The notes: generated by a model from the sequence alone, not told the origin. DNA of 64,000 nt from Gracilinanus agilis (GCF_016433145.1 NC_058130.1:92022595-92086594), one strand, 5' to 3'; positions 6,620 through 64,000 are shown, counted from the stretch's first letter. A program made the numbers and translations.

Positions 6620-7819
<1,200 letters not shown>

Positions 7820-11265: not shown

Positions 11266-11404
11266 ATGGAGAAACTTCCCTCACTCCTTCCCCCCAGGCC
11301 TAGCAGGGGAGCAGGGAGCCTGAGCCATCTGTACTGGATAACCGATACTCCCCATCTCTCAGCCACAAACCAAGCTGGCCACTGCTTCATCCTGCTGCTG
11401 CTAA
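11266..11404 (+). CDS. LAMB2L: LAMB2L coding exon 1 (leader / signal peptide start)
   Basis: agtATGG Kozak; MEKLP...GHCFILLLL; phase-1 donor A|gtaaag at the same position as in LAMB2 exon 1; an alternative start is possible. Confidence 0.55.
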
Positions 11405-14400
11405 GTAAAGAGGATGGGCCGGGAGGAAGTCAGAAGTGGGTGGGTTGTTTGTCCCTTATGTGGGGTGTTGTATTCCCTGGGGGGATGGTCCTTGGAATTT
11501 CTGTTTAGGGCTCTGCCTCCCCTCTGGTCCTCAGTACAGATAAACTATGCCTGTACCCATGAAGTGCCTGACCTTCTGCCCCGACCTGGCTGCTCTGGAG
11601 GAAGCTGTTACCCTCCCACTGGCAATCTAGTTGTAGGCAGGAGCCAGAGTCTCCATGCCTCATCCACCTGTGGTTTGAGTGGGCCTGAGCCCTACTGCAT
11701 TGTTAGCCACTTGCAGGTGTGTATTTTTCTTTGCTAGCAGCCCTTAAGAATGAGGTATGACTCCCAGAGGGAGAAGGACCAAAGTCTTCTAAGAGACCCT
11801 TGAGGATAATGGGTCCAGAACTTTGAGGGTGGAAGAACAGGGGTGAGAAGTTTCCACAGGAGATCCTGGGGAGTTTTCTCTTGGGAGGGGGAGTGAACTT
11901 AGGGGGTTTGATGAAGGGAAACTGTGGACCCTGACCCCCATCTTCTTCTATCCAGGACTCTGAGAAGTGCTTCTTCTGTGACTCAAGGGGCCAGGGAGGC
12001 CATAGAATCAAGAATGTGATCTCCTTAAGTGGACCTGATGGGGAAAGAACATGGTGGCAGGCAGAGAGTGGTGAGGGGATGAGGCATTTCAGGTGGCAGT
12101 GGAAGAAGGAAAGGGGAAAGAAGAGGAAAGGGGTGGGGGAGTCAGGAATGAAAAGCATGTGAGGCAATGGGGTCAAGAGCTGGGCTCTCAGTAGAGTTAT
12201 GGGATAGGTAACAGGGTAGTTCTGACTAGGTCCCTGTTGGTTCAAGGTGTGGAAAATGTCAGTATCCAGCTGGACTTGGAAGGCGAGTTCTACTTTACCC
12301 ACCTTATCATGACCTTCAAGGTACTGAACGTATACCCCTCTAGTTTTAGATGCCATTGTGTTTTTTTCTCATGTGAATCTTGACCCCTATGGATAGGGTG
12401 ACGGGTCTGGAGTCAGAAAAATGGCTTCAGATGCACATTAGCTATGTAACCCTAGGCAAGTCACTTCACCCCTGATTGGCCCAGTTTCCTCAAACTGGAG
12501 ATAATAATGTTTACCTCCCACTGTTGTTATGATGATCAAATGAGATAATAATTGTAAAGCAAATACTTAGCACAATCCTTGGCTCATACATGTTAGCTAT
12601 TATTTCCCATTCCAAGGGTCCTAACCTTGGTGATTCTTTGTCCTGTGCCTCCAAGTCCAGTTACTTCCTAACCTCTGACCCTGTAGTGACTTCCAACCAT
12701 AGAAACACCTTATTCATTCAGCCTGTGCCCCTCACTCTGATACACTTTCCCCCCAGACTTTTCGCCCAGCTGGTCTACTCATTGAGCGTTCAGCAGATGG
12801 AGGTCATTCCTGGCGAGTTTACCGATACTTTGCTCACAACTGCTCTGGCCTCTTCCCTGGGGTACCCCTTACACCTGGCCACAAAGTCAGTGACCTCGTT
12901 TGTGATCAGCGATACTCAAACATTGAACCATCAAGTCAGGGTGAGGTCAGTCCTCTTGTAGAAAGGAAGGATGAGAAATGGGTGGAGGTTGTCAAGGGCT
13001 AGAGTTCAGTGGTCAGAATTTCAGGTCCTATTTCTTGCCCTTATCAGGTAATTTTTAAAGTTCTGGACCCAGCTATTCCTGTGGCAGATCCCTATAGTCC
13101 AGAGATCCAAGGTAAGCGACCTTTCTGATGCCCAGGCCATAAACCTTAGGTACCTCTACCCCTGAGACTCTTCCCCACACCTCTCATACTTTGAGACTCC
13201 CTACCCCCACAGATGCTGAGGCCCAGGGTGAGTGCCCCCTGTAGTTCCTTGTGACCTCCCTTAGAGGAGCATGAATCAAGTCAGAGCCATCTAGTCTGAA
13301 AGAGGTTTCCTTGACAACAACATCATTCCGTAGCTGCTTTCCCTCAATCAATGCTTCCCTCCAGGCATTAGCATTTTACAATGTTTTTGACACAGTATAT
13401 TTTTTTCTTTCTTCCCTAAAGCAAAGGCATCTAATGAAATGATAGAGCAAGCTGAGCATATTTCTTAAAGGGGCCTCATCTTTTCCTTCTCTGAACATCT
13501 TAATTGTTTCTCAGAAAACTATTAACAGCTTCTAAATAAGGGTACATAGTGGTGCCTTCACAGAAAGATTAGGCATGTGGATTCATTGATTTTTAGAACT
13601 GGAGGGGATGGGTTGTTAGAGACTATTTACTCTAAACCCCATAAAGGAGGAAACAGGAATTGAGAGGTAACAGGAATTAGCTTGGAACTAATTAATGGCA
13701 AAGCTGGAAGTCCAGCTTGGATCCAATACCCTTGCCAATGTACCATATTACCTTAGGAATAGATAGTATACAATTCTGGGAATAGCAAGTGACAGGGCTG
13801 GGCTGGTTAGCAAGAATGTGGAGTGATGGGGAAAGAACATGGCGGCAGGCAAAGTGTGGTGAGAAGCTGAGGGGTTAACAAAGGGATTAAGCTGTGCTTG
13901 GAATGATCTATTGGTATGATTCAGTTAGGCCTACCGTAGGAGGAGCCAAGATAAGCATTGTGGGCAAGGAAGAGTGAACAAAGAACGGGAGGCTGGACTG
14001 AGCTGAATGTATTGGGGAGGGGGGGAGGTGGACTTGATTGGAGCATAGGGTAGGAAAGGCCCTGTCAGGTCCCAGCTCTGCCATTTGTTCTATATCCAAT
14101 AACAAGTTATGGTTAAGAGACCAGTCAGGGTTATATGGTCGGATATGTGAGTCAGTATGTCAGAGACAGGACTTGAACTCATGTCTTCTTGGCTTTGAGG
14201 CCAGTTCTCTACTACAACAGGCTGCCTTTCCAGTTACAAAATAGGGATGCTAATATTCATACTCCTTATCTCTGTTTAGATTGTGAATGGTCTTAAATAC
14301 TTGACTAAGGAGTTTGGACCTTATCCTGTTGGTAGTGAAGAGTCATTGAAAATTTCTGAACAAGGGGGTACATAGTCACACCTCTGAATTATTTTGGTAT

Positions 14401-17400
14401 ATGTCTGAAGGATAGGTTGGAGAGAATAGGATAGGAGAGAAAGATGGGTTGGGGAGTCAGAGAGACAGAGAGAAAGATCTGAAGAGACAGAAGGAGAGAG
14501 ACTAGGAGAAACAGAGAAGGGGGGAGAGAGAGACAGACAGAAGCAATAGAGAAGGGGAGGGGGATGAAGGGAGAGAAACTGGAGGCAAGGAGACTAGGAA
14601 GCTATTGAAATAGTCCGTGTTACATAGAATAATAGGTACTTGAACTAAGGTAGCAGAATGAGGAGGTTAGCAAGAGTTGTGGATACAGTATGAACAAGAC
14701 TTGGCGACTGGTTGGATTGACTGGGGGGGGGGGGATGTGAGAGAGAAGAAGACTAAAAGATTGTTCCAAATGATATTTCAAGTCTGAATAAGAAATAAGT
14801 GGGAGGATGGTCATGAGAAAAATCAGGTTTCATGGGAAAGTTGATTACTTAAATATGGGTTATTTTAAGTTTGAAGTGCTGGTGAGATATTGACATGGAG
14901 ATGTCCAGCAGTGGTAGAAGACCAGGAGAATATTCTGTGACAGATACTTCCTTTGCACCCCACAGACCATGATGAGGTGGGGATGTCCAGACTGATGTCT
15001 CCATCCCACCCACCTTCACTACCCCACTTTCCCCAGAGTTGCTTCGAGTTACCAACCTGAGGGTGAATTTCTCCAAACTACACACGTTGGGAGATGGGCC
15101 CCTGGGGGGCTGGGGCCACCGCCATGGGCCTCACTACTACTATGCCTTGTATGAGCTTGTGGTCCGAGGAAGCTGCCTATGCCATGGACATGCCTCTGAA
15201 TGTGCACCTGCTCCTGGTGCCCCACCAAGTGTGGATGGCATGGTGAGTGAAGTCTGAGATCAGGGAGAGTCAGAGATAAAGGAGGAGTTTACTGTGTGTG
15301 GTGGGGGGAGGAGAGTTTCTTCCTGAGGACTGAGTCTCTGGAGTCTCCCTGGGAGTTGGATACCCAGGGTCTTCATGGAATTCAGATTCCTGTTAGTGTG
15401 TCTTAGTGTTTCCAAAGCCTCAACAGCTCTACCATTTATAGGTACATGGGCTTTGTGTGTGTCAGCACCGGACAGCTGGACCCCACTGTGAGCTCTGCCA
15501 GGACCTTCACCATGACCAACCCTGGCACCCAGCTGAGCCTGGGAATCCTCATGCCTGCCAGAGTATGTGTTGCTTGTTGTCTTCCATAATCTATATGCCT
15601 ACTCAGTATTCCCTGAGGATCTCCCAACCCACTAATTTCCCTTTCTTTTTCTCCAGAGTGTGAATGCCACCAGCATGCCAGGAGTTGCCACTTTGACATG
15701 GCTGTTTTTGTGGCCTCAGGCAATGTGAGTGGAGGTGTGTGTGATGCATGTCAGCACCACACAGCTGGGAGGCACTGTGAGATTTGCCGACCCTTCTACC
15801 ACCGGGACCCCCGTGAAGACCCCCGATCCCCAAATACCTGTAAACGTGAGTCCCTTGATGCTGAGTCCTGACTCCAACCATGAACCTGACTCTGATATTT
15901 GACACTCATACCCAGTCCTAACCTCTGGCTCCACCCATAATTTCTGACTATGATATTTGACCCCTTATTCCAAATCTGTTCCTATGTCCCCAGCATGTGA
16001 CTGTGACCCTTCAGGCACCTTGGATGGGGGTCTCTGTGACACACACACAGATGAGGTCCTGGGACTCCTCTCTGGACAGTGTCGTTGCAAAGCCCACGTG
16101 TGGGGCCCACGCTGTGATACCTGTCGTCCTGGTTACTATGGCCTGAGCCCAGCACTGCCTGAAGGTTGTTTATGTGAGTGACCTTGGATTCTCCATGACT
16201 GTGGATCCTAAAACCCTCAACTCAGAATACCTGGTCATGATAGCCTTAGCCTGATGGAGCCCAAAGCTGTCTTTTGACCCTTTACCCTGAGAACTCCAAA
16301 ACATGACCCTAAAAATTTAGGAAGCCCCAACCTCTATATCTCTTATACCCCTAATTACACAACTCAAGACTCTTGGACCCCATGACCCCAAAAACTATCA
16401 ATGCATGACACTCAGTCTCTGGTCTGAGAACAATTTGACCCAAGAGATCCTGTGTGAGTGGCCCCTAGCCCAGGGTTTCATAATGGTTGACCCAGGTTTC
16501 CATAATTTCCTGACTCCCAGAGTCCCAAAACTTGAATACCTAGTCACGACGACTAGCTGGATTTAAAGGCTCTCTGGGAACTCCTTCCCAGTCCAGGTCA
16601 CTATGATTGAGCCTAATTTATTGACTGTCTCTAACCCTCCCCTCCTCAGTTTTTCTCCAGACCATCCTTTCTATAACCTTTTGACACCCTCTTTGCTTCC
16701 TTAGCTTGCAGGTGTGATCCACGGGGCACAGTTCCAGGTGACACCCCCTGTGACCCCATCAGTGGTGACTGCTATTGTAAGCGTTTTGTCACTGGTCAGA
16801 ACTGTCACCAGTGCCTGGTGAGCTCTTACCTTGACCTCAGATTCTTTTTTTTCCGTTCTGATCCTGGTCCTTCCTAAAACCTAATTACCTAATTCCCAAC
16901 CTAGAATCCTGTCTTTGACCTTCAGCACTGAACTCTGAGCCATACTCCTTGTCCACAAGACCCTTAAACCCTTAACCATATGTACTAACTCAACACTGTT
17001 ACATTCACTTTTGTAATAGCTTTTAAAGTTTATTCTCGAAAATTCAACACAAATGAAGCTTTTCTGCTATGTCTCTAAGTCAGTTTACTTCTAAGTGTAA
17101 GCTTTCTTATCTATACAAATGAGAAGGTTGTACCCAGCAATCCCTGTGGGTCCTCTGACATTCTGCATTCATGTTTTTGGGTTCCTTTTAGCTCTGATAT
17201 ATGATGTCTTCTGTTCTTATATTCCTTCCAGATCTGAAATTCTTTATTCTGCACTCTGAGTATCCTTTTAAGCAGATGATTTTTAAGGTTCTATATAAGC
17301 TTCAGTTTTTTTCCCCAAGACACCTTGTCTTCCCAAGTGGCAGTAGGATGCCTTCCTGTGAATTATTATCATACAGAATACAAAATCCACTCAGAGAGGG

Positions 17401-20400
17401 GACTTAGCCAAGGTCACATGGCTAGTTTGTGGAAGAAACAGGTTTACAAACCAGATTTCTTGCTTCCAAATCTAGCATTCTTTCTGCTAAACCACACTGC
17501 TTCTAGGTTAGTTTATTTTCCCAATTACTATTTTAAAAATATTTTCCGTGTAGATCGTTTTATTGGAAAATTTGCTGAAAGATGAACAAGTATTTTAAGG
17601 AAGTGAAATTTAAGGTATCATCAGTACTATTATCACTAATCATCTTTTAATCTAACACTGGATTAACTCAGACCTGATTAGGAGATCTTATCACTTTGAA
17701 TTGGAAGAGATTTGGAGATCACTGAGTCCTACCCCCCTCATTCTATTGATAAGGAAACTGAGGCCCAGAAAGGGTGCATAATTTGGCCTTTGTCACATAA
17801 GGAGATCCAGGATTTGAACCTATGATCTCCCATCTCCAATGGATGCCAATTTTACTCTTTTAAAAATTACTCTGAACACTTACTTTTGAGTCTTACTCGT
17901 GATCTTGAGCACTTGGTTGGGAAAGAACTATGGATTCTCCATGAGTAAACCAAGGGGTTGTTCAAGATAATTTTTAAGGCTCTTCCCTTTGAGAGGCTAA
18001 TTGACATTGGCTGGTTCTAGGAAATCAGTCACTACTCCTAGGCCTGATTCTCTCTGTCTCTATCACAGACAGGGACTGACTAATTAGAAGACTGCTCAAA
18101 GGACCTTATTTATCTCTTGTCTCTGGATCAGCTAGATGGCCTTTCTGCTTCTGCCGATGCCTTGGAGTCTTCTCTCTTCCACCTTGCACAACCAGTGCCA
18201 ATAAGGCATTCTATCTGTTTTTCTCCTGATCATCCCTTACTCTCCCAAAGAACTAGCAGCACTTATCACAACACAGCTTTGTGTCTGTTAGCTTGAGATC
18301 ATGTTTAAAATTACCTATAACAGTTCTCATAGACCTTCAGTCTCATTATTTTTATAGCCTCTTCCAGAGGGACTGGATTTTTGGAGTAATTTGTAGTAGG
18401 TTGGAATAAGTCAGTCTAGTGCTCCCATAGGGGCTGGGAGAGAAACATAGGGAAGAAGCCCACAGCAGTGGCAAGTGATGGTGGCAGGGATGGTGATCTT
18501 TGAACTGCTATAGGATGAAAGTATGCTCTCTGCCATGTGGGCACCATGGGAAAAAGCCCTGGTTGCTTTACTTTACTTATAGCTTTGCATGGAAATAGAC
18601 TTTTTTTTAAAACCCTTACCTTCCGTCTTGGAATCAATACTGTGTACTGGTTCTAAGGCAGAAGAATGGTAAGGGCTAGGCAATGGGGGTCAAGTAACTT
18701 GCCCAGGGTCACACAGCTGAGACGTGTCTGAGGCCAGATTTGAACCTAGGACCTCCTGCCTCTAGGCCTAATTCTCAATCCACTGAGCTACTCAGCTACC
18801 CCCAAAATAGACATTTTTTATTGACAAATTTAGACAGAAAACTTCACAAGATTTTTCTGAATTAGCAACCTCTGAGTATCACCCTCTGATGTCAAAACTG
18901 CTGATCCCTGATCATCTTCAGACTTATAGACCTTGCTCCCTGGCTCCCAGAGAGGAGACAGCATGGTGTATTTGGTGCCAAATTCTTAGGTTTAGAGACA
19001 GGAGGTCCAGTTTTGACTTTGGATGTCCTGTGCAAATCATCTAACTTCCCTGAGCCACAGTGTCCTTGTCTATAAAATGGGGATACTCATAACCGTATTT
19101 TCTACTTGGAGGGGATGTTGTAGGGCTAGTTCTTTGTAAACTTTTAACTCTTTCAGAAATCTCAGTCAAATAATTTATGATTCTTCCCCTCCTTTCTCCC
19201 TGCAGCCAGAATTCTGGGGACTAAGCAATGACTTTACTGGTTGCCGGCCTTGTGATTGTGATTTTGGAGGAGCCTATAGCAACAGGTGGGGACTTGGTCA
19301 ATAGGGTTTGGCCAAGAGCCTATAAGCTAGAGGAAGGGGGGATTATAGGCAGTGCCAGGGCCAGCAATGGTAGATTCACTCTTTCCCTTTCCACTACACG
19401 GGTCACTAGGTGTTCGTCAGGGGAAGGCCTTTGTCCTTGCCGCCCTCACCTACAAGGCCGGAACTGCCTTGAGCTTCAGTCTGGTTACTTCTGTGCAGCC
19501 CTGGACCAAGCCATAGCTGAGGCAGAGCTTGGGCAGAGGCTCAAGCCCTTTGACCCACGGCTACCTGTGAGTATATGAGCTCCAAATGTTGGACCTGAGA
19601 GAGGGAGAGATGGCAGAGGAAAGGATCAATCAGAGAGGGCTTTTTGGATGAGGATCTTGAATAAAAGACAATGAGTTTCTCACCGTAGAAAGTCTCCAGA
19701 TGAATGGCCACCCATCAGGATGTTGTAGAAGTAATTCCTGTTCTTGTATAGACTCCCAGGTGCCGTTGGAAGACTCCACTGGCTTAGAGGTTTTGTGAGG
19801 CTCTGAGCTCAGGAATGGGAGAATTTGAAAAGAGGGTAAAGAGGTGAGGTTGTTGGTATTTTGGAGTAGTAGCTGGACAAAAGAGATAGAAGCAACTCTG
19901 GCAGTGATGTATACAAATAAGAGGAGACCTGGACCTTTAGCCCTGCTATCCTTCAGGGATCCCTTTTCCTTGATGCCACCCCCAACTGCCTGCCAACAAC
20001 AGGACCCATGCTGAAGAGGCTCAGACCCCGACTCCGACGACAACGTAGCATCCCCTGCCCTCTCCCTGTTACTCGTCGTGGACGTCAGAGCCACCAACTA
20101 TCCAAGGTGAATAGTTGATGGGAAAGCTCTGGGGATGAGAGAAGGTTGCAGGACAAGAATGTACTAAGGGAGCTTCCTAGGGTAATAGGAAAAGAAAAAA
20201 CCTAAGCTCTGCTCTTGGGGAGCTCCCAGTCTGTGGGGAGATAAAGCAAAGAGAGCCATATTTTCCCCTTGAGACCTCACAGTTTAGAGGGAGACATGTT
20301 ATTTCTGTCTCATTCCTAGGCTGCTGTGGAGCCTAGGCCTTGGGACAGGGCCCCTCATGCCTCATCCTGGACAGGCTCTGGGTTTGCCAGGATTGAAAAC

Positions 20401-29400: not shown

Positions 29401-32400
29401 TGACAGGGGAGGGGGAGTTCATAGAGAGAGAAATTTAGACCAAATGTCAGGGAAAATTTTCTTAATGAATGATGAAAACAGTCTCAGAATGGAATGGGCT
29501 GAATTCTCCATCATCACAGAAGTCTTCTACAGAAACTGGCTGCTAGCTTGTCAGATATGCTGTATGTATATTGAGGCCACTAGGTGGCACCATAGTGCAC
29601 AGAGCATCAGACCTGGGGTTGGGAGGACCCAAGACCAAATCCAGGCTCAGACACATAATTGGCTGTGTGACCCTAAGCAAGACACTCCATCCTGTTTGCC
29701 GTGGTTTCCTTTTGTAAAATGGGAGTAATAATAGCACCTACCTCCTAGGGTTGTTGTGAGTATCAAAAGGAAGTTAAAGTGCTTAGCACAGTGCCTGGCA
29801 CATAGTAATTAATTGCTATTTAAATGAATGTATAGATGATGTGTTTTATTTTAATAAAAATACTTTATTTTTGCCTATTATATGTAATAACAAATTTCCA
29901 CATAAGTTTTATGAAGTTAACATAAGTTTTATGAAGTTACATAATCCAAATCTTCTCCTCCCCGTCCCTGCGAGCTGGCACAATCAAAACAATTCGATCT
30001 GGGTTATACATCTTTTATCATGCAAANNNNNNNNNNNNNNNNNNNNNNNNNNNNNNNNNNNNNNNNNNNNNNNNNNNNNNNNNNNNNNNNNNNNNNNNNN
30101 NNNNNNNNNNNNNNNNNNNNNNNNNNNNNNNNNNNNNNNNNNNNNNNNNNNNNNNNNNNNAGATTCTTTGAAGGGCATAGGTGGGTTGGACTGCTAAAGG
30201 TCCTTTTTGTCTCTCAAATTCTGAGATGCTGGGATCATAGGCTCATAAGGGTTAGATCAAGAAAGGGCCTTAGCTTTTATATTATTGAATCTTCTAATTT
30301 TATAGAGAAGGGCCCTGAGTCCCAGAGAGGAGAAGTGATTTACATGGTTTGTATCAAAGCCAGGATCTGAATTAAGGAAAGTCTGGTTTAGGAGTGAGGA
30401 GACCCAAACATGTTTGTAGGCAGAGATAAAGGAGCCAGGGAAAGATTGAAGGTATATGAGAGTGAGTGAGGAGATCATCTATGACCTAAGAGATTGGTGG
30501 TGAACCTTTTAGAGACTGAGTACCCAAACTGTAACCCTCATGCAATATGTGAGCCTTTCTCCCACCCTACCTCCAGATGGGGAAGTGAGGAAATGCTTCC
30601 ATTGGGCTGCTGGGCAGAGGCTTGGGTGATGGGAGAAATGTCCTCAGGCTTGCATGTGGAGAGGGGGAGGGGAGCAGCCCCATCTGGCACACAAGCCATA
30701 GGTTTGCCAACATGGGCCTAAGGCCTTGGAGGAGATGGTGGGTAGAGATGAACTGAATTGTGAAGAAAGAGAGTAGCTTGGGGAAGGATCAGCCTTGGTC
30801 AGGAGAAGGGAGTTATAGGGAATAATCAAAAGACTGGATGAGAACTTTTGTGTATGTAGACTATGTCTCTGTCCTTCTAGGAGTCCTTGGTGAAGGGTTT
30901 CTTATAACTTGGACTGGGCTTTCCATTGGTCTCCTATCTCCACAGGTCACTGGTCAATGCCCATGCCAGGAAGGATTTGGAGGACGTACCTGCTCACAGT
31001 GCCAAGAAGGGTACTGGGGGGACCCAGAGAAGGAGTGCAGAGGTGAGGAGCAGTGTCTGCAGAGGGTGAGCTAAGGGTGAGAGGGACATTGGGGAGGCAG
31101 CTTGGTATGGTGGATAGAGTCTGGTTTTAGCAATAAAGGCCCTGGGTTTGAATCCCATTCTTGCTGTTTACTAGCTGTTGGCCTTGGACAACTCTCTTCT
31201 GAGTCTTTTATCTCATCTATAAAATAAAGAGGTTAGAGACTAGGTAGATCTGTAAGGACCTTCCGTCCTATAGTCCTAAGAAAAGCAAAGTATATGGGAG
31301 AAGGGTTGGATGAATTCAGGGACCAGGAAAATCAGTTACCCTTGCTGATCCCAACTTCTTTGTTTTTTCCCAGCCTGTGCCTGTGACCCTCAGGGCTCAG
31401 TCTCTCTGCATTGCCACCCTAGGACAGGGGTCTGCTCATGTCTCAATGGTATCTCAGGCCCTCAGTGCAAGGCCTGTGCCCGGGGTTCTCGGGGCAGTTT
31501 CCCCCACTGCCGGCCCTGCCCTACCTGCTTCTCTCACTGGGATAGCCGACTAGGTCTCCTCCAACAGCGGTTGGCCACATTGGCTCAGGGGAGGGATGCC
31601 CTGAGTGAGGCAGCCACTGACCGGAGCAGTGGGGGGCGGTTACTGTCCCTGGAGGCTGCCCTGGGACAGGTCCAAGGAATCTTGGTGTCCACCTACCCAC
31701 TGGTGGGGCCCTTGCAGCAGCTTTCAAAACAGCGGGATGGACTCAGGCAAGACAGCAACCTCAGTGGCTTGGAGAAGGACAGGGAGGGTCCAATTGGGGA
31801 ATTGGGTCCAGTCTATAGAGGCCATATCTTGAAGTCAAGTGTTCAACTTTGGCAACTTTTGGCAACTTCTGATGCCAAGGTTAGTCTGTCAGAGTCAAGA
31901 ATTAATCTTCATCCTTGAATGACTGTCCATTTTCTCTTTAGGAGGGAGGTATCCATGCTGAGTCGAGCACTTCGAGGGGTGGAGCGAAGTATGGCTATGA
32001 GTGGTCCCTGGGCTAGAGCTCAGCACGCCCGAATAGGCCAGCTGACACAAGAAATGGAACATCTTAATCACTTGGCCACCCAGCTCAGGGAGGCCCCTCG
32101 GGGAGCTCAGGGTATGGCCCAGAGGGAGGCTGGAGACACTTGTGGGGAGACTGTTGGTGAAGAAGCTGGTCCTCACATGCTGACCTGTTTCCCCAGATGC
32201 TGCTTCCCTGGTCTCCAAGGCTGTTCTCATCTCCCAGAAGTCCGAGTTTGGTATCATAGTCATGACTGCCCTGACAGACACAGAGAGTGCCCTGAGCCAA
32301 TCCCGTAATGTCCGGCACAGAACAGAGGGGCTGCTGCAAGAAATGAAGCCTCCCAGCAGAGCAGCTGTCTGGGGGGAGCAGCTCCAGGCACTTGTGAATG

Positions 32401-35400
32401 CCTCCTGGGCCCTGAGCCCCAGCCTGGCCCAGCTCAAGGTCAGAGCCTCTGGGACGGGAATGATAAGGATGTCTTATATTTGGGCTGGGGAGTTCTGGTG
32501 TCAAGAAAGATCTCTAGTGAAAAGAGATCTTGGGTGGGGTAAGGGGTAGGGTGGCACTCAGACATCACAGACAGGGTTTCTGGTTTAGAGGAGCCTGAAC
32601 TTAAGAGTCCTTTCCTTCCTACCTCTGCGATTTTGGGTGAGTTTCATCCCCTGTATTCTCATGGCCTAAGTTTCCTCCTCTATAAAATGACTAAGGTAAA
32701 CTAGATAGCCTCTCCATCCCCTTATAGTCTGGACATTCTGTGCTTGGGATTCTGTGACTGTGGGGCCAGGAATCTCTGGGATAACTGTGTCTTGCATTCC
32801 AGAGATACCGCTTTAGGCCCCTTGTATCTGTCCACAGGTCTGTGGGGGACCATGGGATGTGGGGAGGGCCTGTGCTCTCTCCCCCTGTGGGCCAGCCTCT
32901 TGTTCTGGAGCATTGCCCACTTCCTTGTGGGCGCTCAGGACGGCTCAAAACACATCCCATGCTTTGGGTACCACAAGTACCAGACTGGGGCGGCTACGTC
33001 GACGGGTAAGGAAGAACCACATTACGAGGCTAGAATTAGAAGTGTGGGAGAGATGGGCTGGGATGAGATTCTGCAGAGGAATGAGGGTAGAGCCAAGACA
33101 GTTAAGAAGGACCAGCCCCACTAATTGATCCCACTCCCCTAGCTACAACGGGTTGGGACCATGGCAGGGGCTGCCCACTCACAAGCTGAGGAAACACTGA
33201 GCCGAGCTCGAGCCACATGGCATGGGGCCAGCACTGCCTCCACGTTGGCCACTATCCAGAGGATCCGGGCCTTCCTCACAGGTAAGGATAAGGGTGAGGG
33301 GAATAAGATAATGTCCTCCCCTCCAGTCAGACCCTCAAGCAGGAGATTGAAGAGCTCTGACCTCAGGCTTAGCAGTCAAAGACATTTATCCTTTGCGATC
33401 AGGGTTCAGGCAGAGTCTAGGTCAGGAGTGAGGTTGGCAAGTCAGGGTTGTGGCAGGAGCTCCCAGGAAGTTAAAGGTTTGTGCCAGGGGTCACAGTTAG
33501 AGTGGGGAGAGGGCTCTGTCTCTCCTCATCCCCATGAAGGTGCAGATTTCCCTCACCCAGGAAAGCAGAATTTATGGTCATTTGGGGATGGGGGTGGGGT
33601 AAGGGGGTTGCTGAACTAAAAAGAATACTAGTTGAGTTCAGAAGACATGGATTTGAATCCTGTCCTCAGTACTTAGTAGTCATGTGACCTCAAATAAGTT
33701 GATTTCCATTTCTGAGCCTCAGTTTTCTTGTCTGTTAAATAGTTATTGTAATCTGCTATATATTCTCAGATATAGGTCATAGGGTTTAGATCTAGAAACA
33801 TCCTAGAGAACTTTATTCTGAGGAAAGTGTTTTGTAAACCTTAGAGCACTATAGAAATGGGAACTTTTGCTTATCTCATTTCCCTAGCCAACTAGGGGAT
33901 GCCATAGGGCCTGGAGTCAGGAAGACCTGAGTTCAAATTCACCCTCGCAGATTTACTAGCTGTGAGACTCTTGGCAAGTAACTTTACCTCAGTTCCTTGT
34001 TATAAAAATGGAGGTAATAAAAATACCTACCTCGAAGGGTTGTTGTGAAGATCAAATGAAATGTTTGTAAAGTGCTTAGCACATAGTAGGTGCTTTAAAA
34101 TGCCTGTTCTCTTCTCCTCTCCTTTTTCCTCTCCTCTCCCAATGAGGTTTAAGAATCAGAATCCATGTCAGTGGGCCTGATTTTAGTCCCCCGTCTTTCT
34201 CCTCCACTCCAGATGAGGGTGCAGACCCTGAGAGTGTAGAGCTGGTGGCCCAAAGGGTCCTGAAAATTCCTCTGCCTCAGGGGGGCCAGAGAGCTGTAGA
34301 ACAACTGTTGGAAGAGATCCGAGATGCCCTCCAAGTTCCAGATAGTATGGACTGGGCTCTGCCTTCAGCCCAGTACCTCCTTCAGCAAGCCCAATGGGCC
34401 AGGTAAGGACCTCCTCCCAGAGTTTAGAATATGGAGCTAGAAGGGAACTGAGAGATTATCTCTTCTCACTCTCACATTTTACAGAAAAAAAACCCAAAGC
34501 TTGGGATGGTTAAATGACTTTTCCCAGATCCCACAACATTCATTTAATGAGCATTTTTTAAAGTACTTATTGAGTGCCAGGCACTGTGATAGGTGCTCAG
34601 AATACAAAGAGAAGCAGGAGCATGACCCCTGCCCTCAAGGAGCTCCCATTCTAACAGGGGAGATGAGATACTTTCAGAGTATATGGAAGAGAATCTCAGA
34701 GGAGAAGGTGCTGGATGGGAATTGAGGAGAGAGCTCAGGAAAGGCTCTCCAGAGGGTAGAAGGGGATCTGAGGCTTCATGGAGGCAGTAGGCAGAAATGA
34801 GGAGGGAGAGCCTTCCAGGCATGGAAGACATCAAGCCAATGAAAAGGCACCCAGTCTCAGGGGCATAGTATATACTTAAGGGAGTAAGTGTTAGAGGACT
34901 GGAAAGGAGCCAGCTTGTGAAGGGGCTTTTATCTGTCAAACAGAAATCAATATTTGTGCCAGGTCTTGAAGCAGTGTTTTAGGACTCTGAATAGAGGTTG
35001 CTTTGCTTCCATAGAACATTAGGGATCACCAAATACAGAGCACTTGAGGGCATGGCTCTTTATTCCAAACACTTCCTCTTTTAGAGGAAGAAAATGATAT
35101 TGGAAAGAAAGAAGCAACTTACTCAAAATCATATGCCAGAGATGCTCCCATTTATCATGGGATTTGAAATGCAACACACCATCCACTATAGGTCACACTA
35201 TGCACTGCTAACAAAGCCCTTCCTGAGACCACTGAACACTGAGGGTGAGGGTCAGGGCCAACTGACGACCTCTGTACCTACAGGGAGGATGCAGGCAGAA
35301 CCCAGGAAAATGTGGTAAAGACCCAGAGAGTTCTAACTGAGGCCCAGAACAATGTAGGAAGAGCTGAGAAAGAGCTTCGGAAAACCAAGCAGACCCTGCG

Positions 35401-38400
35401 AAGCCTAGAGGTTCAGACACAGGAGGTGAGATCCCAGGGTGCTATCTTCCATAGGCCCCATATTGCCCAGAATCTCTAGATTGCCTCCAGATACCCCAAG
35501 CATTCAGCATCTTCCATTGCTCCAAGAAACCTTTACCCAAAGTCCATAGAACATTAGGGATCACCAGTTATAGAACAGTCATAGAAAGGCCTGTTCTTTT
35601 CTTGGTGCATGGATTTAGTATGAAACAGAACCTCCCATGACTTGTCAGAAGATATGACTAATATCTACTTCTGGTGATTCATATGGACATAAATGATATC
35701 ACCAGAAGGAACCTAGAAGTATTGCCAAAGATTACAAAGTCTTGGGCAAGAAAATGGAAACCAAACGGTCTCCACAAGTGGTATTTTTATCACTGCTACC
35801 TGCTGAAGGCAAGGGATGCAGGAGAGAACAGTTGATTAAGAAAATGATGCTTGTGAATGGAATTTGGATTTCTCTTGAAATAGAGGAACAACAGACCTCT
35901 GGACAGAGATGAAGCACACCTAACAAAAGTGGATAAGAGGGGGCAGCTAGGTGGCTCAGTGGATTGAGAGCCATGCCTAGAGGCAGGTTCAAATCTGGCC
36001 TCAAACACTTCCTAGCTGTGTGACCTTGGGCAAGTCACTTAACCCCCATTACCTAGCCGTTACTACTCTTCTGCCTTGGAACCATTGATTCTAAGATGGA
36101 AGGTAAGGGTTTAAAAAAAAAAAAGTAGGTAAAAATTTATTTGCCTGGTGTCATGCAAATCTAATCAGAAGGGCTTTAAACCAAAAATGATGGAAGAGGG
36201 AAAAACTTGCTGGCATATATTCAAGTTAAAGGCAATAGGAGTACCTAAATTGTAGGAAAAGAAATAGCAGTTTAAGATACCCTAAAGTCCACTGATGATA
36301 GAATCCAAGAGAAGAGCAAGTAGTAAATCACACAGACCTAAGTGACACAGATGCACAAAATGTAAGAAATAAGCAAATTAAACTAGAGGTTCTAACACAA
36401 GAAAATAATTTTGACCTCCTACTTCTCATTGAGACTTGGGATGAAGTCTGTGACTAAAAAAAAGATGCTGGATTGGTATTCCCCGTAGGAAAAAAACTGA
36501 GCAAGGTAAAACTGAGTAGTAGCATTGTATATTAAGAAGGCATTTTCCTGTGTGGTATTCAAGGAACCAGAAGATTTTGGCATTGGAATATACTACAGAT
36601 GATATGAGCAGGTTCCAGAAACAGATCACCATTCCACAACTAAAAGCAAAATATAGCAAGGAGGGGGGAGTCACCTGAATAGCTTTTGGCAGAAACTCTG
36701 CCTAAAGTAGAGCAGTTAGTATCTTCTTGACTTCTCTTTCCATCCTTCAAGAAGTGAAGAAACCAAGAAGGGGGGGGGGAATCTCTTCTGGATCTAATTC
36801 TCAATTACAAGGAAGAACTATGACTACTGGCTTTTAGAATTGGTGACTAAGAAGGACAGGAAACATTTCTTAGGTTTTTTCTTTTTTTTCTGAATTAAGA
36901 AAAAAACTCCTACCTTCCATCTTAAAACCAATACTTAGAATCAATATTGGCTCTAAGTCAGAAGAGTGGTGAAGGCTAGGCAATAAGTGTTAAATGACTT
37001 ACCCAGGTTCACATAGCTAGGAAGTATCTGAGGCCAGATTCGGACCCAGGATCTCCCTTCTCTAGGCCTGGGTTCTCAATTCACTGAACTATTTAGCTGT
37101 TCCCCCTAGATTTTCAGAAAGTAGATTTCAAAGGATTTAGAGGAAGGTTAGGTAGCATTTCATGGACTGAAATAAAATTCTATCTTGGAAGCAAGCCTGG
37201 GAGAGATGAGAGACTCTCAAGAATGAAATTCTGAAGAAACAAAAAGAAACCATTCTGACAAGGACGTAAAAGGGTAGTTGTTTGAAACGAACAAAGAAGA
37301 TACATAGAGAACATACTACCCAACATGGATTTTCAAAAGATAAGTATAAAAGACAGAAGCATGAGTAATAGGCATGGTTGGTAATAGGATAAATGCAAAC
37401 ACAGCAGAGTTCTGTGAAAATGGTGTCAATAGAGCTAAAGCTCAGAGTGAACAGAGAACTCTGAGGAAAGAGAAAGACCATTAATGAAAGAAAGGTGGGT
37501 TTTCAACAAATGAATTGGGGAAAGAAATCCAAGAAGCTAAAGCACTTGTGGGGTGGGACTAGAATGGTCATAATTGACCACTGAAAGAAGGCTGAGCTCA
37601 GCTCTCATCTGGTCTGTTTTCTATGCCAAACAAAACTTCCTGTGGACTGGAAAGGACAAGAAAGATGGCTGATGGGTAGTGGATAATCAGTCTAAGTAGA
37701 TAGTGGCTCTTGTTCATCAGTTAACAAGTATTAAAGTAAGTTGCAGAGCTACAAATTAAAAGAATACACATCCTCTTAAGGAGCTTACCTTCTACCATGG
37801 TGCAGACAACATGTAGATGTATATATAAATATGTACAGAATAAATACAAGGGAGCTGGTGAGGGAGGGCACTTCTAGTTGGGGAGAATAGGAAAGAGAGA
37901 GATTGAGGTTTTGAGATAAATGGGAGAAAGAGGAAACTTTCAGGTTGAGTCAAATGGCCTCGATTTCCTTAGAAGCTAAGTCTTAGAATTTGGAGGAGGG
38001 GAAGGTATGAGAGAGGAAACATAGGACTGGGGAAGGACAAATGTCCAGATTTTTGCAAAGGGAAGAGAATGGAGTATACAAACTGTAGACCAGTGAACTT
38101 GATATTAATTCCTGGGGAAATTCTAGAATGTATTATTAATGAAAGTTAATGAAAATCTAAATAAGAAATGGTGATCCAGGAATCTATATAACTGTATCAA
38201 AAATAAGTCATGCCAAACTAAGTTTATTTTTTTTTGGCAGGTTCACTAAACTGATAGATAAGGAGATTGTTATAGTTAAAGTTTATCAAGATTATCAAGT
38301 TAAAGATGATCAAGATAAAATATCTTATGTTCTTTTTACAGAAAAGATGGAGAGTTATATGTGTGAGACAGTATCATTAGCTGGATTTGGAATTTCATTA

Positions 38401-41211
38401 AATGACAGGACACAAAGAGTAGTTATTAAGGGTTCATTGTCAGCTTGGAAGGAGATCTCCAGGGGAGGGAGTGCACACAGAGCTGTGATTGGCCTTGTAT
38501 GTGATTCTTTCATGGACTCAAATGAAGGAATGAATGGCATATTTATTAAGTTTGTAGATGACACAGCTGGGAGAATTGGCTAACATACTGTACAAGAGAA
38601 TCAAGGTGCAAAAGATCTCGAAAAGTTAAAATATTTTTTTGGGCTCTTAATATGGAGACATTTAATAGGGATAAATGTGAAGTCCTACATTTGGGCTTAA
38701 GAAATTGACTCCACAACTACAAGATGGAGGAGAATGTTTAGGTAGTAGTTTGTCTGAAAAAGATCTTCATGTTTTAGTGGACTGCAAGCTCAACATGAAC
38801 TATATGGTAATAGAATCATAGGCTGTATTAAAACAAAACTCCCAAGAATCAAGAAGGGCCTGGTCCCACATCTGAAGGTTTGTGTCCAGTTCTGGCTAAT
38901 CCATTTTAGAAAGAACATTGAAAAGCTGGAGAGCATCTGAACGGTTGATTGAAGTAAGGATGTTTAAACTTCCTAAGAATGAGGCTGTGAAGACTTCATG
39001 CAACTCTGCCTCACTTAAATCAAATTCACTCTCAAACCATCACTCCATGTTGCCATTGATCCTCTTAGAAAATGAAGGATAAACAAAACTACACTCCAAG
39101 AAACCTCCATCAATGTCCTAGTGCACTAAACTACTCCTTAAAATTTCACCATTGTTTCCCTAAGGTTTCCCTAAAGCCTTCCCCAGTATCTCTTGTATCT
39201 CCAGTCCCCCTAGGAAATCTTCCTTAACTTTTCAAACTTCCCTCAATAGCCTATATATCCAAACACCACAGGAAACTGCACCCAATGACTCCTGTATCCT
39301 CCAGCACTTTATAAACCTACTTGAATTTACCCTAGGACTCTTAACATACCCAGGAAACCTCTCCCGTGTCCATTTTGTTCCCTAACCCTATTGACTGTCA
39401 GAATCCTAGGATCCCATCCTCCAGTGTCCTCTGTGCTCCTCAACATGCTTCATCCACCTCCAAATATTCTGTCAGACTGCCAACATCCCAGAAAACTTCC
39501 CTAGTGTCTTCCTTTGAGCCCCCAAATCCTGAAAGCCTCTCCTAACGCCCTTTAGGAATCCTAAACTCAGCCTTCTCTCAATCCCCCCCAAGACCCCAAA
39601 CCTCTTTCCTTTCTGTCCTAACCCCATTCTCCTGTTCTTTACATCTTATTTGGCCCCTGACCACAGGTGGCCTTAGGGCTAGTTCAGGTGGCACATGATC
39701 TGGATGTAGCTCCCACCCTGGACCAGCTCCTGGGGGCAGCTGATACTCTACAGGCCCAGGTGTCACAAAATAAACTACAGTTTCGGGAGGCCCAGGAGCA
39801 AGCAGAACAGGCATCAGACACAGCTGCAAACTTGGGCAAGGTGAGGCAGGGGCCTTCTTCCTGATTACTGCCAAGGTTTGCCAGGATCATGTGTCCTGGG
39901 ATACAGGGGCAGTACCCAGAAGAACAGAGGTCTCAAGACACCCTATTGTGGAAATTGATTCCCGGGTGGTTGGTTTCTGAATGGTGTGGCAGGAACACAA
40001 GGGAGAGAGGGGGAGAGGAGGATAGGAAAGGGATAGAATTCCAAGATGACTGGCCCTTTCTGGCCTTACCTCCCTCTTCCCTCCCTGGTTCTCCTTTGCC
40101 CCAAGGACCTGCAGACAGCCAAGCTACAGTTCTCAGAGCTGCAGTCTGGGATCAGTGGTCTTGGGGATGAAGTGAATGGGGCCAAAGATCGTTTGCAGCG
40201 AATTCAGACAGAAGCCAAGGAACTGCTGAAGAAAGCAAGCAGGAACCGAAACCGTCTAGAGGGTGAGGCTATGGATGTGTGTACCTGGTGGGATATCAAA
40301 AATTTGAGGATTTCATGAGAGCCTTGGGTGTTTTGGGGACTCAATGAACCCCAGAAAGCTCTAGTGTTTGGGGCAGATTTCTCGGGGAAATCTCATATGT
40401 TTAGAAGGGGTTCAGAACCCTGAGTGTCAAAGGGTTTCTGAAGTACTAAGAATTTGGAGGCCTTTCTCAGAGGTGTCCTAGATGCTAGGGGGTCCCCTAA
40501 AGCCATAAATATTGGAGGGCTCAGAATGGTTGGGGAAGGTCTTTGAGAGTAAGGTCTTAAGAAGATGTTGAAGTCCCAAGTACAGGGGTTTCTGAGCCAG
40601 GTAGTAGGGTTTTCTGAATATTGGAGATGGGTTTTCAGGAGGCCTTGGATGTTTGGTAGTCTTAGTGGTCCTTAGATGTTTAGGGTTCTTGGGTGAGAGA
40701 AGCCCAGGTATTTGTGGGTTACAAAAGCCTTTGCTGTTAGGGAAGCTCAGGGTGTATGAGATTTTCAGGAGACACTAAGTATTTGGGTTCATGAATACTG
40801 GGATCTTTTGGAGCCCTGGACACTTGGATTTTTTTATGAGGCCTAAAGTGTCTTGGGGTAGAGGGATGTTATTGGCCATGGGTGTTTGGGGCCTTGAATG
40901 TTAGAGATTACAGAGGACCTTGAATGTTGGGGGATCTCTGAATTGGTAGGGGTCCTGAAGTTCCAGAGGGCCTGGGGTGTCTGGGGATTTTAAGGGTTCC
41001 TGAGGATTGGGAGGTGATGGGGGCTAGGTTGGTGTTTGGGGCCCTGCCCTGCCTCAGCTTTGTGTTCGGTTTACCAGGCCTGGAGAAACGTTTTGCTCGG
41101 AATGAGCAGGCACTTGGAGAGAAGGCAGCTGAGCTTCAGGCCCTGGAGAGTAGAGCCTTGGGGCTGCTGGAGCAGCTGAGGCAGGAGGCCAGTGCCCACG
41201 CCACCTGCTGA
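11266..41211 (+). CDS. LAMB2L: Laminin beta-2-like chain, intact multi-exon gene (34 coding exons, 5541 nt, 1846 aa); positional counterpart of human pseudogene LAMB2P1
   Basis: join(11266-11404,11535-11716,11956-12070,12247-12320,12757-12945,13048-13111,15037-15242,15442-15562,15657-15845,15994-16173,16705-16817,19206-19285,19410-19566,19957-20106,20320-20478,20566-20687,20815-20935,23393-23585,24248-24391,24494-24725,24873-25036,27255-27494,27661-27881,30946-31042,31374-31746,31942-32111,32197-32438,32838-33005,33143-33281,34213-34402,35284-35425,39667-39840,40106-40262,41078-41211). No stops or frameshifts; intron phases match the neighbouring LAMB2. Confidence 0.9.
11535..11716 (+). CDS. 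LAMB2L: LAMB2L exon 2 (LN start)
   Basis: ctcag|ta; ...[19 protein letters not shown]...[12 protein letters not shown]; |gtgtgt. Confidence 0.9.
11956..12070 (+). CDS. LAMB2L: LAMB2L exon 3 (LN)
   Basis: tccag|[38 protein letters not shown]|gtgagg. Confidence 0.92.
12247..12320 (+). CDS. LAMB2L: LAMB2L exon 4 (LN)
   Basis: [25 protein letters not shown]; 74 nt as in LAMB2. Confidence 0.93.
12757..12945 (+). CDS. LAMB2L: LAMB2L exon 5 (LN)
   Basis: [29 protein letters not shown]...IEPSSQGE; 189 nt as in LAMB2. Confidence 0.93.
13048..13111 (+). CDS. LAMB2L: LAMB2L exon 6 (LN)
   Basis: [21 protein letters not shown]; 64 nt as in LAMB2. Confidence 0.93.
15037..15242 (+). CDS. LAMB2L: LAMB2L exon 7 (LN end, LE1 start)
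   Basis: [19 protein letters not shown]...[23 protein letters not shown]. Confidence 0.93.
15442..15562 (+). CDS. LAMB2L: LAMB2L exon 8 (LE1)
   Basis: [40 protein letters not shown]; 121 nt. Confidence 0.93.
15657..15845 (+). CDS. LAMB2L: LAMB2L exon 9 (LE2)
   Basis: [29 protein letters not shown]...; 189 nt. Confidence 0.93.
15994..16173 (+). CDS. LAMB2L: LAMB2L exon 10 (LE3)
   Basis: [15 protein letters not shown]...[14 protein letters not shown]; 180 nt. Confidence 0.93.
16705..16817 (+). CDS. LAMB2L: LAMB2L exon 11 (LE4)
   Basis: [37 protein letters not shown]; 113 nt. Confidence 0.93.
18601..18803 (-). mobile_element. Marsupial SINE (SINE-1_MD-like)
   Basis: Full-length antisense copy; aaatagac duplicated at both flanks. 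Confidence 0.9.
19206..19285 (+). CDS. LAMB2L: LAMB2L exon 12 (LE4/LE5)
   Basis: [26 protein letters not shown]; 80 nt. Confidence 0.93.
19410..19566 (+). CDS. LAMB2L: LAMB2L exon 13 (LE5, LF start)
   Basis: [52 protein letters not shown]|gtgagt; 8 codons longer than in LAMB2. Confidence 0.9.
19957..20106 (+). CDS. LAMB2L: LAMB2L exon 14: extra 150-nt phase 0-0 exon with no LAMB2 counterpart
   Basis: ccttcag|[50 protein letters not shown]|gtgaat; open frame; all 7 CpGs sit in Arg codons. Confidence 0.75.
20320..20478 (+). CDS. LAMB2L: LAMB2L exon 15 (LF)
   Basis: AAVEPRPW...[10 protein letters not shown]...[13 protein letters not shown]; 159 nt as LAMB2 exon 14. Confidence 0.92.
20566..20687 (+). 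CDS. LAMB2L: LAMB2L exon 16 (LF)
   Basis: [40 protein letters not shown]. Confidence 0.92.
20815..20935 (+). CDS. LAMB2L: LAMB2L exon 17 (LF)
   Basis: [24 protein letters not shown]...GGTILLDS. Confidence 0.92.
23393..23585 (+). CDS. LAMB2L: LAMB2L exon 18 (LF end)
   Basis: [34 protein letters not shown]...[18 protein letters not shown]; 193 nt as in LAMB2. Confidence 0.92.
24248..24391 (+). CDS. LAMB2L: LAMB2L exon 19 (LE)
   Basis: [24 protein letters not shown]...GFGPAGCS; 144 nt. Confidence 0.93.
24494..24725 (+). CDS. LAMB2L: LAMB2L exon 20 (LE)
   Basis: [20 protein letters not shown]...TTGRHCE; 232 nt. Confidence 0.93.
24873..25036 (+). CDS. LAMB2L: LAMB2L exon 21 (LE)
   Basis: [23 protein letters not shown]...CVCAPGYA; 164 nt. 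Confidence 0.93.
25509..25709 (-). mobile_element. Marsupial SINE (SINE-1_MD-like)
   Basis: Antisense copy with T-tail. Confidence 0.85.
26141..26347 (+). mobile_element. Young marsupial SINE (SINE-1_MD-like)
   Basis: Full length; 13-bp TSD AAGGGAAAAACAG at 26128-26140 and 26348-26360. Confidence 0.92.
27255..27494 (+). CDS. LAMB2L: LAMB2L exon 22 (LE)
   Basis: [14 protein letters not shown]...[17 protein letters not shown]...GCR. Confidence 0.93.
27661..27881 (+). CDS. LAMB2L: LAMB2L exon 23 (LE)
   Basis: [13 protein letters not shown]...[27 protein letters not shown]. Confidence 0.93.
28589..28835 (-). mobile_element. MAR1-like SINE
   Basis: ttttcttggcaaagatagtagagtggtttgccattttcttctc tail plus CORE; boundaries approximate. 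Confidence 0.7.
29843..30026 (-). mobile_element. L1 3' end fragment abutting the assembly gap
   Basis: ttacat/aataacaaatttccaca...gttacataatccaaat...gatctgggttatacat motif, recurring at 61037-61335. Confidence 0.55.
30027..30160. other. Assembly gap (134 N) in LAMB2L intron 23
   Basis: N run. Confidence 0.99.
30492..30715 (+). mobile_element. Non-autonomous hAT/Charlie-type DNA transposon (MITE)
   Basis: Ends gattggtggtgaacct...aggtttgccaacatgg approximate a 16-bp TIR CAGTGATGGCGAACCT; flanks acctaaga and gcctaagg resemble an 8-bp TSD. Confidence 0.65.
30946..31042 (+). CDS. LAMB2L: LAMB2L exon 24 (LE)
   Basis: [32 protein letters not shown]; 97 nt. Confidence 0.93.
31374..31746 (+). CDS. 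LAMB2L: LAMB2L exon 25 (last LE, coiled-coil start), ends at a GC donor
   Basis: CACDPQGS...[15 protein letters not shown]...RDGL; CAG|GCAAGA gives 373 nt, identical to LAMB2 exon 24. Confidence 0.88.
31942..32111 (+). CDS. LAMB2L: LAMB2L exon 26 (coiled coil)
   Basis: [15 protein letters not shown]...[13 protein letters not shown]; phase 2-1 as in LAMB2. Confidence 0.85.
32197..32438 (+). CDS. LAMB2L: LAMB2L exon 27 (coiled coil)
   Basis: [17 protein letters not shown]...[14 protein letters not shown]...SLAQLK; 242 nt as in LAMB2. Confidence 0.87.
32838..33005 (+). CDS. LAMB2L: LAMB2L exon 28 (L-beta knob)
   Basis: [26 protein letters not shown]...TRLGRLRRR|gtaagg. Confidence 0.87.
33143..33281 (+). 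CDS. LAMB2L: LAMB2L exon 29 (coiled coil)
   Basis: [22 protein letters not shown]...IQRIRAFLT|gtaagg. Confidence 0.85.
34213..34402 (+). CDS. LAMB2L: LAMB2L exon 30 (coiled coil)
   Basis: [22 protein letters not shown]...LLQQAQWA. Confidence 0.9.
35284..35425 (+). CDS. LAMB2L: LAMB2L exon 31 (coiled coil)
   Basis: [47 protein letters not shown]; 142 nt. Confidence 0.87.
35939..36120 (+). mobile_element. Marsupial SINE inserted in the CR1
   Basis: gggcagctaggtggctcagtgg head; imperfect TSD aaaagtggataa / aaaagtaggtaa. Confidence 0.85.
36900..37106 (-). mobile_element. Marsupial SINE inserted in the CR1
   Basis: Antisense SINE-1_MD-like body. Confidence 0.8.
39667..39840 (+). CDS. LAMB2L: LAMB2L exon 32 (coiled coil)
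   Basis: [12 protein letters not shown]...[28 protein letters not shown]. Confidence 0.87.
40106..40262 (+). CDS. LAMB2L: LAMB2L exon 33 (coiled coil)
   Basis: [15 protein letters not shown]...[27 protein letters not shown]. Confidence 0.88.
41078..41211 (+). CDS. LAMB2L: LAMB2L exon 34 (C-terminus)
   Basis: [44 protein letters not shown]. Confidence 0.9.

Positions 41212-43752: not shown

Positions 43753-64000
<20,248 letters not shown>

Follow-up and report, generated by a model that had tools for sequence, protein, structure and literature searches.

A stop-free LAMB2L gene under purifying selection between CCDC71 and LAMB2 in Gracilinanus agilis

The DNA under study was a stretch of 64,000 nucleotides from Gracilinanus agilis, referred to below as the window. 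Comparison of its translated plus strand with itself revealed two paralogous multi-exon genes, gene A at approximately 11.5-41.2 kb and gene B from approximately 44.2 kb to the window end. Gene B was identified as LAMB2 and gene A, hereafter LAMB2L, as an additional laminin beta gene. An intact beta gene of this kind, located between CCDC71 and LAMB2, had been proposed in an earlier note on this DNA, and was confirmed by the Pfam match of the upstream frame to CCDC71L and by the gene model. The order CCDC71, additional gene, LAMB2, all on the same strand, was found in the window as well as in Sarcophilus, Monodelphis and Dama (fallow deer).

The model of LAMB2L was built with a spliced protein-to-genome aligner written for this analysis, in which introns were allowed in three phases and stops and frameshifts were penalised but permitted. 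With the Sarcophilus orthologue (P0151) as guide protein, the raw alignment comprised 34 exons from 11278 to 41208, separated by 33 introns, with no stops, no frameshifts and a single one-residue gap. Its ends were extended to an ATG at 11266 and to the stop codon TGA at 41209-41211. The resulting 34 coding exons (11266-41211; 5541 nt, 1846 aa, only the terminal stop and no frameshift) reproduced exactly the open frame described before. With the same aligner, the Sarcophilus protein was recovered exactly from its own locus (L001), and stop-free 34-exon models were obtained for Monodelphis (L003) and fallow deer (L002), matching the deposited proteins except in the first exon. Coding exons 2-34 had identical lengths in the three marsupials (window, Sarcophilus, Monodelphis). 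All acceptors were AG and all donors GT, save for one GC donor after 31746. This GC donor (31747-31748, 3' of exon 25) was also seen in Sarcophilus, Monodelphis and Dama, and is thus present in four species. The features of the window are listed below; exons 2-34 were placed by spliced alignment, with further support given in brackets.

6620-7819, + strand: CCDC71 coding frame (Pfam PF15374, CCDC71L, E=4.6e-148)
10881-10882, + strand: AT of the probable true start, last two bases of a 5' exon (donor GTGAGT; split start identical in Monodelphis)
11266-11404, + strand: exon 1 as first drawn, putative n-region and h-region of the signal peptide (orthologue-supported start at 11298, after acceptor CCCCCCAG)
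11535-11716, + strand: exon 2, end of signal peptide and start of LN (Pfam Laminin_N)
11956-12070, + strand: exon 3, LN
12247-12320, + strand: exon 4, LN
12757-12945, + strand: exon 5, LN (Pfam Laminin_N, E=5.8e-17)
13048-13111, + strand: exon 6, LN
15037-15242, + strand: exon 7, end of LN (VTNLRVNF) and start of LEa1 (Pfam)
15442-15562, + strand: exon 8, LEa
15657-15845, + strand: exon 9, LEa (Pfam EGF_laminin)
15994-16173, + strand: exon 10, LEa
16705-16817, + strand: exon 11, LEa
19206-19285, + strand: exon 12, LEa
19410-19566, + strand: exon 13, LE5 and start of the LF insert
19957-20106, + strand: exon 14, polybasic segment of 150 nt (equivalents in Sarcophilus and Monodelphis, 150 nt, and Dama, 147 nt)
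20320-20478, + strand: exon 15, LF, laminin IV type B (Pfam PF21199)
20566-20687, + strand: exon 16, LF
20815-20935, + strand: exon 17, LF (Pfam PF21199)
23393-23585, + strand: exon 18, end of LF (Pfam below cut-off)
24248-24391, + strand: exon 19, LEb
24494-24725, + strand: exon 20, LEb (Pfam EGF_laminin, E=2.4e-20)
24873-25036, + strand: exon 21, LEb
27255-27494, + strand: exon 22, LEb (Pfam)
27661-27881, + strand: exon 23, LEb, ending in phase 0
30027-30160, no strand: assembly gap of 134 N in intron 23 (27882-30945), where paralogue and three orthologues predict no exon
30946-31042, + strand: exon 24, LEb (read in a shifted frame in RefSeq P0001)
31374-31746, + strand: exon 25, last LE and coiled-coil entry, followed by the GC donor
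31942-32111, + strand: exon 26, coiled coil
32197-32438, + strand: exon 27, coiled coil
32838-33005, + strand: exon 28, shortened L-beta knob with 4 Cys against 6 (cysteine comparison)
33143-33281, + strand: exon 29, coiled coil
34213-34402, + strand: exon 30, coiled coil
35284-35425, + strand: exon 31, coiled coil
39667-39840, + strand: exon 32, coiled coil
40106-40262, + strand: exon 33, coiled coil
41078-41211, + strand: exon 34, end of coiled coil, C-terminal AHATC and TGA stop
44243-64000, + strand: LAMB2 (gene B, downstream paralogue), cut by the window end (groups with syntenic LAMB2 of Sarcophilus and Dama)

The N run at 30027-30160 is the only one in the window. The LE repeat continues in frame from the phase-0 end of exon 23 into exon 24; the equivalents of both exons are consecutive in LAMB2, only about 270 nt apart, and the 221-nt and 97-nt exons are likewise adjacent in the Sarcophilus, Monodelphis and Dama loci. 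The reading frame is therefore independent of the gap. The corresponding intron is ungapped in Monodelphis and measures 2880 nt, as against 3064 nt in the window.

Several further observations were made on the non-coding parts. Intron 17 spans about 21 kb in Monodelphis (L003 19831-41250) and 2.5 kb here (20936-23392), a large size change within didelphids. Candidate polyadenylation signals for gene A are the AATAAA motifs on the plus strand at 42563, 43037 and 43206, which lie 1.35-2.0 kb past the stop and ahead of LAMB2. Introns of gene A and of LAMB2 also show short stretches of translated similarity (18601-18790, 25499-25704 and 26140-26340; also 57586-57651 and 62354-63003) that resemble shared interspersed repeats. 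The RNA-type sequencing runs listed were all labelled 'RNA?' and belonged to another organism; for positions 11200-16900, 23 of them, some of only 3-90 million letters, each contained 5-9% of the sampled words, an overlap more likely due to a shared repeat or to conserved exons of a relative than to expression in G. agilis. A Logan contig (L004, found from P0450) was considered as a transcript and rejected, as it was colinear with genomic DNA, introns included.

The 5' end of the coding region was compared with the marsupial protein models, of which those of Monodelphis, Notamacropus and Dromiciops start with MPSRG or MPGRG. In Monodelphis the initiating methionine codon is split by an intron (CAAAAT/GTGAGT at the donor, then CCCCCCAG/GCCTAGC at the acceptor), and identical sequences are present in the window at 10881-10882 and 11298. 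Splicing of AT (10881-10882) to 11298 yields ATG and a protein of 1836 aa beginning MPSRGAGS, equal in length to the Monodelphis model. The unspliced sequence has AGG at 11296-11298; the junction has the form AT/GTGAGT and CAG/G, as in Monodelphis. The ATG at 11266, which the earlier note had taken as the start, stands in good context and in frame in the window. It is out of frame in Monodelphis owing to an 11-nt indel. Translation probably begins at the split ATG, which gives the 1836-aa form, and probably not at 11266. The choice of start codon is nevertheless treated as uncertain. The two candidates differ in the first 11 residues only, and the hydrophobic core of the putative signal peptide, conserved among marsupials, lies downstream of both.

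For comparison, the exons of LAMB2 were mapped with a LAMB1 guide and a free end, since the gene is cut by the window end. Exon lengths (gene A/LAMB2) were 182/173, 115/133, 74/74, 189/189, 64/64, 206/203, 121/121, 189/189, 180/180, 113/113, 80/80, 157/133 and 150/none for exons 2-14, and 159/159, 122/128, 121/127, 193/193, 144/144, 232/232, 164/164, 240/225, 221/218, 97/97, 373/373, 170/185, 242/242, 168/204 and 139/145 for exons 15-29. The eleven length differences reported earlier (+9, -18, +3, +24, -6, -6, +15, +3, -15, -36, -6) were all found again and are all multiples of 3. Exon lengths agree modulo 3 between the two genes throughout, and so do the intron phases, which bears out the shared intron positions and phases claimed before. 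Domain order is also common to the two genes, with per-exon identities of about 35-80%. LAMB2 differs from LAMB2L in belonging to another ancient clade, in the absence of exon 14 and in its full six-cysteine knob. A PDB sequence search with the LF exon of LAMB2 returned a single match, 5LF2 (laminin beta-2), at modest identity.

The domain composition of gene A is that of a laminin beta chain. Pfam searches on its exons yielded Laminin_N, EGF_laminin and the beta-specific LAMININ_IV_B. The LN matches (PF00055) on exons 2, 5 and 7 covered profile positions 1-35, 103-169 and 195-233, and the domain aligned throughout with beta chains; LE repeats were matched by PF00053 and PF24973. For LF, PF21199 scored 38.8 bits on exon 15 and 28.2 bits on exon 17 (cut-off 27), and 20.3 bits, below cut-off, on exon 18. 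The coiled-coil entry motif CxxCxxCF..WD and the C-terminal ATC are present and align with other beta chains, so that the LN, LE, LF, coiled coil and terminal cysteine named in the earlier note were all recovered. Gene A retained 124 of the 126 cysteine columns conserved in non-mammalian vertebrate beta chains, both missing ones being outside the LE repeats; platypus LAMB2L keeps all 126. 'PYCIVSHLQ' and 'VTNLRVNF' are readable in the alignment of gene A, and the LN serine (YCIVS) and arginine (TNLRV) said to be kept are indeed there, in contexts that are common to LAMB2 and hold the Pierson-syndrome residues.

In the L-beta knob, gene A has four of the six cysteines, and the two lost ones fall within a 14-residue deletion common to all three aligned marsupials. 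This segment is retained in platypus, birds and fish. Eutherian LAMB2L lacks three to four knob cysteines, partly different ones, and platypus has all six; since the losses partly differ and the platypus knob is intact, the knob was eroded independently in marsupials and eutherians after the monotreme split. The polybasic segment of exon 14 occurs in all sequences of the LAMB2L clade, in a diverged form in LAMB4, and neither in LAMB1 nor in LAMB2; within LAMB2L the segment with R-L-R-R-Q-R is conserved from amphibians to mammals. The exon is constitutive in the Sarcophilus, Monodelphis and deer models. On the evidence of these alignments it is an ancestral trait of the LAMB2L/LAMB4 lineage and no new cassette. 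R-L-R-R-Q-R may be a proprotein-convertase site.

LAMB2L is not new to the public databases: RefSeq and Ensembl annotate it in G. agilis, where the RefSeq model is partial and garbled, as well as in nine or more further marsupials. Models of 1717-1894 aa were available for Monodelphis, Sarcophilus, Sminthopsis, Macrotis, Dromiciops (low quality), Notamacropus, Petaurus and Trichosurus, and a shorter one (1601 aa) for Vombatus; near-full-length models (1828-1894 aa) exist for at least seven marsupials besides G. agilis (Monodelphis, Sarcophilus, Sminthopsis, Notamacropus, Macrotis, Petaurus and Dromiciops). The orthologues of Monodelphis and Sarcophilus share 94.7% and 87% protein identity with gene A, along with the exon 2-34 lengths, the GC donor and the location between CCDC71 and LAMB2. 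Models of 1847-1848 aa are available for the two monotremes. Among eutherians, models of 1782-1923 aa were found for sheep, ibex, reindeer, white-tailed deer, Rhinolophus, Hipposideros, Phyllostomus and Echinops, and shorter, partial or low-quality models for goat, cattle, hippopotamus, Eptesicus, Molossus, Tenrec, elephant shrews and Sorex. The check at DNA level concerned the deer gene, the other eutherian entries being annotated protein models. At the fallow deer locus, a KLHDC8B-like Kelch-repeat gene on the minus strand is followed by CCDC71, a laminin of 1830 aa and LAMB2; its LAMB2L DNA comprises 34 stop-free exons (5490 nt) of the same pattern, with a 147-nt exon 14 and the GC donor. 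The best 120 protein matches included none from a primate, rodent or carnivore. In humans, the order is CCDC71-LAMB2P1-LAMB2, with LAMB2P1 (formerly LAMB2L) a unitary pseudogene; by this gene order it occupies the same chromosomal position as gene A, which differs in being intact and constrained. The earlier suggestion that the gene had been lost in eutherians, and that its heterotrimers might be absent from them, was not supported, as the deer copy is intact and the eutherian clade is sister to the marsupial one.

The nearest protein to gene A is the RefSeq entry P0001, 'laminin subunit beta-2-like [Gracilinanus agilis]', of 1498 aa; the full model of 34 or, with the split start, 35 exons was derived in the present analysis. 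P0001 is identical to our model wherever the exon structures agree, and departs from it in a first exon at 9318-9419 without signal peptide, in a shifted frame in exon 24, in internal splice sites in exons 25 and 26, and in ending after exon 29. In P0001, exon 24 (30946-31042) is misframed after a micro-exon and the frame is regained at an internal acceptor in exon 25 (31466 onward). Were LAMB2L expressed mainly as this product, lacking signal peptide and C-terminal coil, it would not supply a trimer-forming chain. We consider this very unlikely. If RNA data drove P0001, real splicing may differ from the 34-exon model. An out-of-frame exon 24, however, wrecks an otherwise conserved LE cysteine pattern, exons 30-34, omitted by P0001, are conserved with a dN/dS of 0.26, and the models of seven other marsupials reach 1828-1894 aa. 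The odd part moreover adjoins the gap-bearing intron, which fits an artefact, and the P0001 structure is probably an annotation artefact beside that intron.

Selection was estimated as dN/dS (omega) by the Nei-Gojobori method on codon alignments. Against Sarcophilus, dN was 0.069 and dS 0.44 (omega 0.158), with regional values of 0.05-0.08 for LE, 0.15 for LN, 0.20 for LF and 0.26 for the coil; against Monodelphis, omega was 0.208. A three-taxon estimate for the window's own branch gave dN 0.013, dS 0.053 and omega 0.25 (bootstrap 0.17-0.40). Over the same 640 N-terminal codons, omega was 0.062 for gene A and 0.052 for LAMB2. LAMB2L is under purifying selection, the window's own branch included. 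The dN/dS near 1 that the earlier note had named as refuting was not observed (0.158-0.25), and no disabling change was present in the Sarcophilus and Monodelphis models. Stops, frameshifts, lost splice sites and a dN/dS near 1, the marks of a unitary pseudogene, were all absent from gene A.

These values also weigh on the idea that LAMB2L is a silent or very recently silenced relic whose frame is still open for want of time. It draws on the orthologue being reported as a pseudogene in humans, on papers in which LAMB2P1 is handled as a lncRNA or pseudogene, and on the long mammalian branches and eroded L-beta knob. Such a relic is hard to reconcile with the omega of 0.25 at a dS of 0.053 on the window branch, with usable splice sites at all 33 introns and no stop in 5.5 kb, with a short arm constrained as in LAMB2 and with exon lengths equal to those of Monodelphis and Sarcophilus, and we regard it as very unlikely, somewhat more so than a mainly truncated product. 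The preferred reading is that of a functional gene, which LAMB2L very probably is.

The origin of LAMB2L was examined in two maximum-likelihood trees (46 and 38 rows, about 1830 columns, LG+G4), anchored by partial LAMB2 genes placed by synteny, LAMB1 of Bombina, fish genes named LAMB4 and the halves of fused models taken separately. A LAMB2L clade was recovered with 100% SH-aLRT in both trees, with gene A inside it and apart from LAMB1, LAMB2 and LAMB4; gene B, and not gene A, grouped with the syntenic LAMB2 genes. The clade comprised chimaera, shark, coelacanth, ray-finned fish, amphibians, sauropsids, platypus, marsupials and eutherians, roughly in species-tree order; its orthologues include the RefSeq models of Notamacropus, platypus, sheep, deer and bats as well as zebrafish lamb2l, in one well-supported clade. 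Its sister group was LAMB4 together with one lamprey gene (100%), and LAMB1, LAMB2 and the other cyclostome genes formed the opposite clade (95-99%). The mammalian and therian stem branches of LAMB2L were long (0.25-0.34 substitutions per site). Forcing LAMB2L and LAMB2 together cost 154 lnL units (AU p=2e-53); the constraint group was set after the first tree had been seen, the hypothesis itself having come from the gene name. Tandem duplication of LAMB2 within a single lineage, or homogenisation with LAMB2, as the name 'beta-2-like', the adjoining position in the same orientation and the shared intron positions and phases might suggest, is refuted by this AU test and is contradicted as well by the shark-to-mammal orthologues with LAMB4 as sister and by an exon 14 common to LAMB4 and missing from LAMB2. 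The description of the gene as an ancient paralogue rather than a new duplicate therefore stood, with the 100% clade reaching from shark to mammal, and its supposed LAMB2-like origin did not.

LAMB4 resembles LAMB2L as its sister family, in the basic segment between LE5 and LF and in lying directly upstream of a LAMB1/2-type gene. It is nevertheless a separate orthologous group: Danio aesculapii has both (P0377, P0262), identity to gene A is about 34% (Coregonus LAMB4 part), and the LN motif is GDL in LAMB4 and TGNL in gene A. A fusion model in pigeon has a LAMB4-type gene immediately upstream of LAMB1, and in a Polypterus fusion model and a swift model a LAMB2L-type half is joined to a LAMB2-type half. 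In teleosts, lamb2l-lamb2 and lamb4-lamb1a have been reported as tandem pairs (PMC9504374). The simplest reading would be that LAMB2L-LAMB2 and LAMB4-LAMB1 are the surviving copies of one ancestral tandem pair, duplicated as a block. Names in the databases were found to be inconsistent, as 'laminin, beta 2-like' of Esox (P0362) fell in the LAMB4 clade and 'laminin subunit beta-4' of Bombina and Xenopus (P0203/P0189) in the LAMB2L clade.

Taken together, we assign the region at 11.3-41.2 kb, with a probability of roughly 0.85, to the G. agilis orthologue of LAMB2L, a protein-coding gene under purifying selection that is predicted from its sequence to encode a complete laminin beta-type subunit. 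The predicted order is signal peptide, LN, LEa, polybasic segment, LF, LEb, coiled coil with a shortened L-beta knob, and C-terminal cysteine. By analogy with known laminin beta chains, the protein would be secreted, its coiled coil would join one alpha and one gamma chain, disulphide bonds forming at the coil entry and through the C-terminal cysteine, and its LN domain would take the beta position in the polymer node. In zebrafish, Lamb2l protein has been detected in skeletal ECM proteomics (PMC3946537). The ancestral function may in part be relaxed or altered, in view of the loss of two of the six knob cysteines in marsupials and of three to four in eutherians, and of the long mammalian and therian stems. 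LAMB2L has been lost or disabled in some eutherian lineages, as in humans, and not in all. A wider picture is offered tentatively and is rather less likely than not to hold in all its parts: LAMB2L might be a working LAMB4-type fifth beta chain in monotremes, marsupials and scattered eutherians (ruminants, bats, afrotheres), forming heterotrimers that humans lack, with a knob remodelled independently in marsupials and eutherians and with an RxRRQR loop next to LF that could permit proteolytic processing.

Reviews list four laminin beta chains in mammals. In the literature searched, LAMB2P1 appears only in expression lists, lamb2l almost only in fish papers, and no mammalian study of 'laminin subunit beta-2-like' was found; in one teleost paper, lamb2l is treated as an extra gene from the teleosts' own genome duplication (PMC9504374). 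LAMB2L is a member of a known family, is not specific to marsupials and bears a name that misleads as to its origin. As public annotation already lists it, no new gene has been discovered, nor is a new mechanism described; the value of the finding lies in a correction for comparative basement-membrane biology and for the annotation of G. agilis. In contrast to an origin in the teleost genome duplication, the present data point to a gene shared across jawed vertebrates, with LAMB2L and LAMB2 paired as LAMB4 and LAMB1 are. Among mammals, marsupials retain it intact and under constraint and fallow deer has an intact copy, with near-full-length models in monotremes, other ruminants, several bats and a tenrec. 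Since LAMB2L is retained in these other mammals, work in mouse and human would miss one beta chain.
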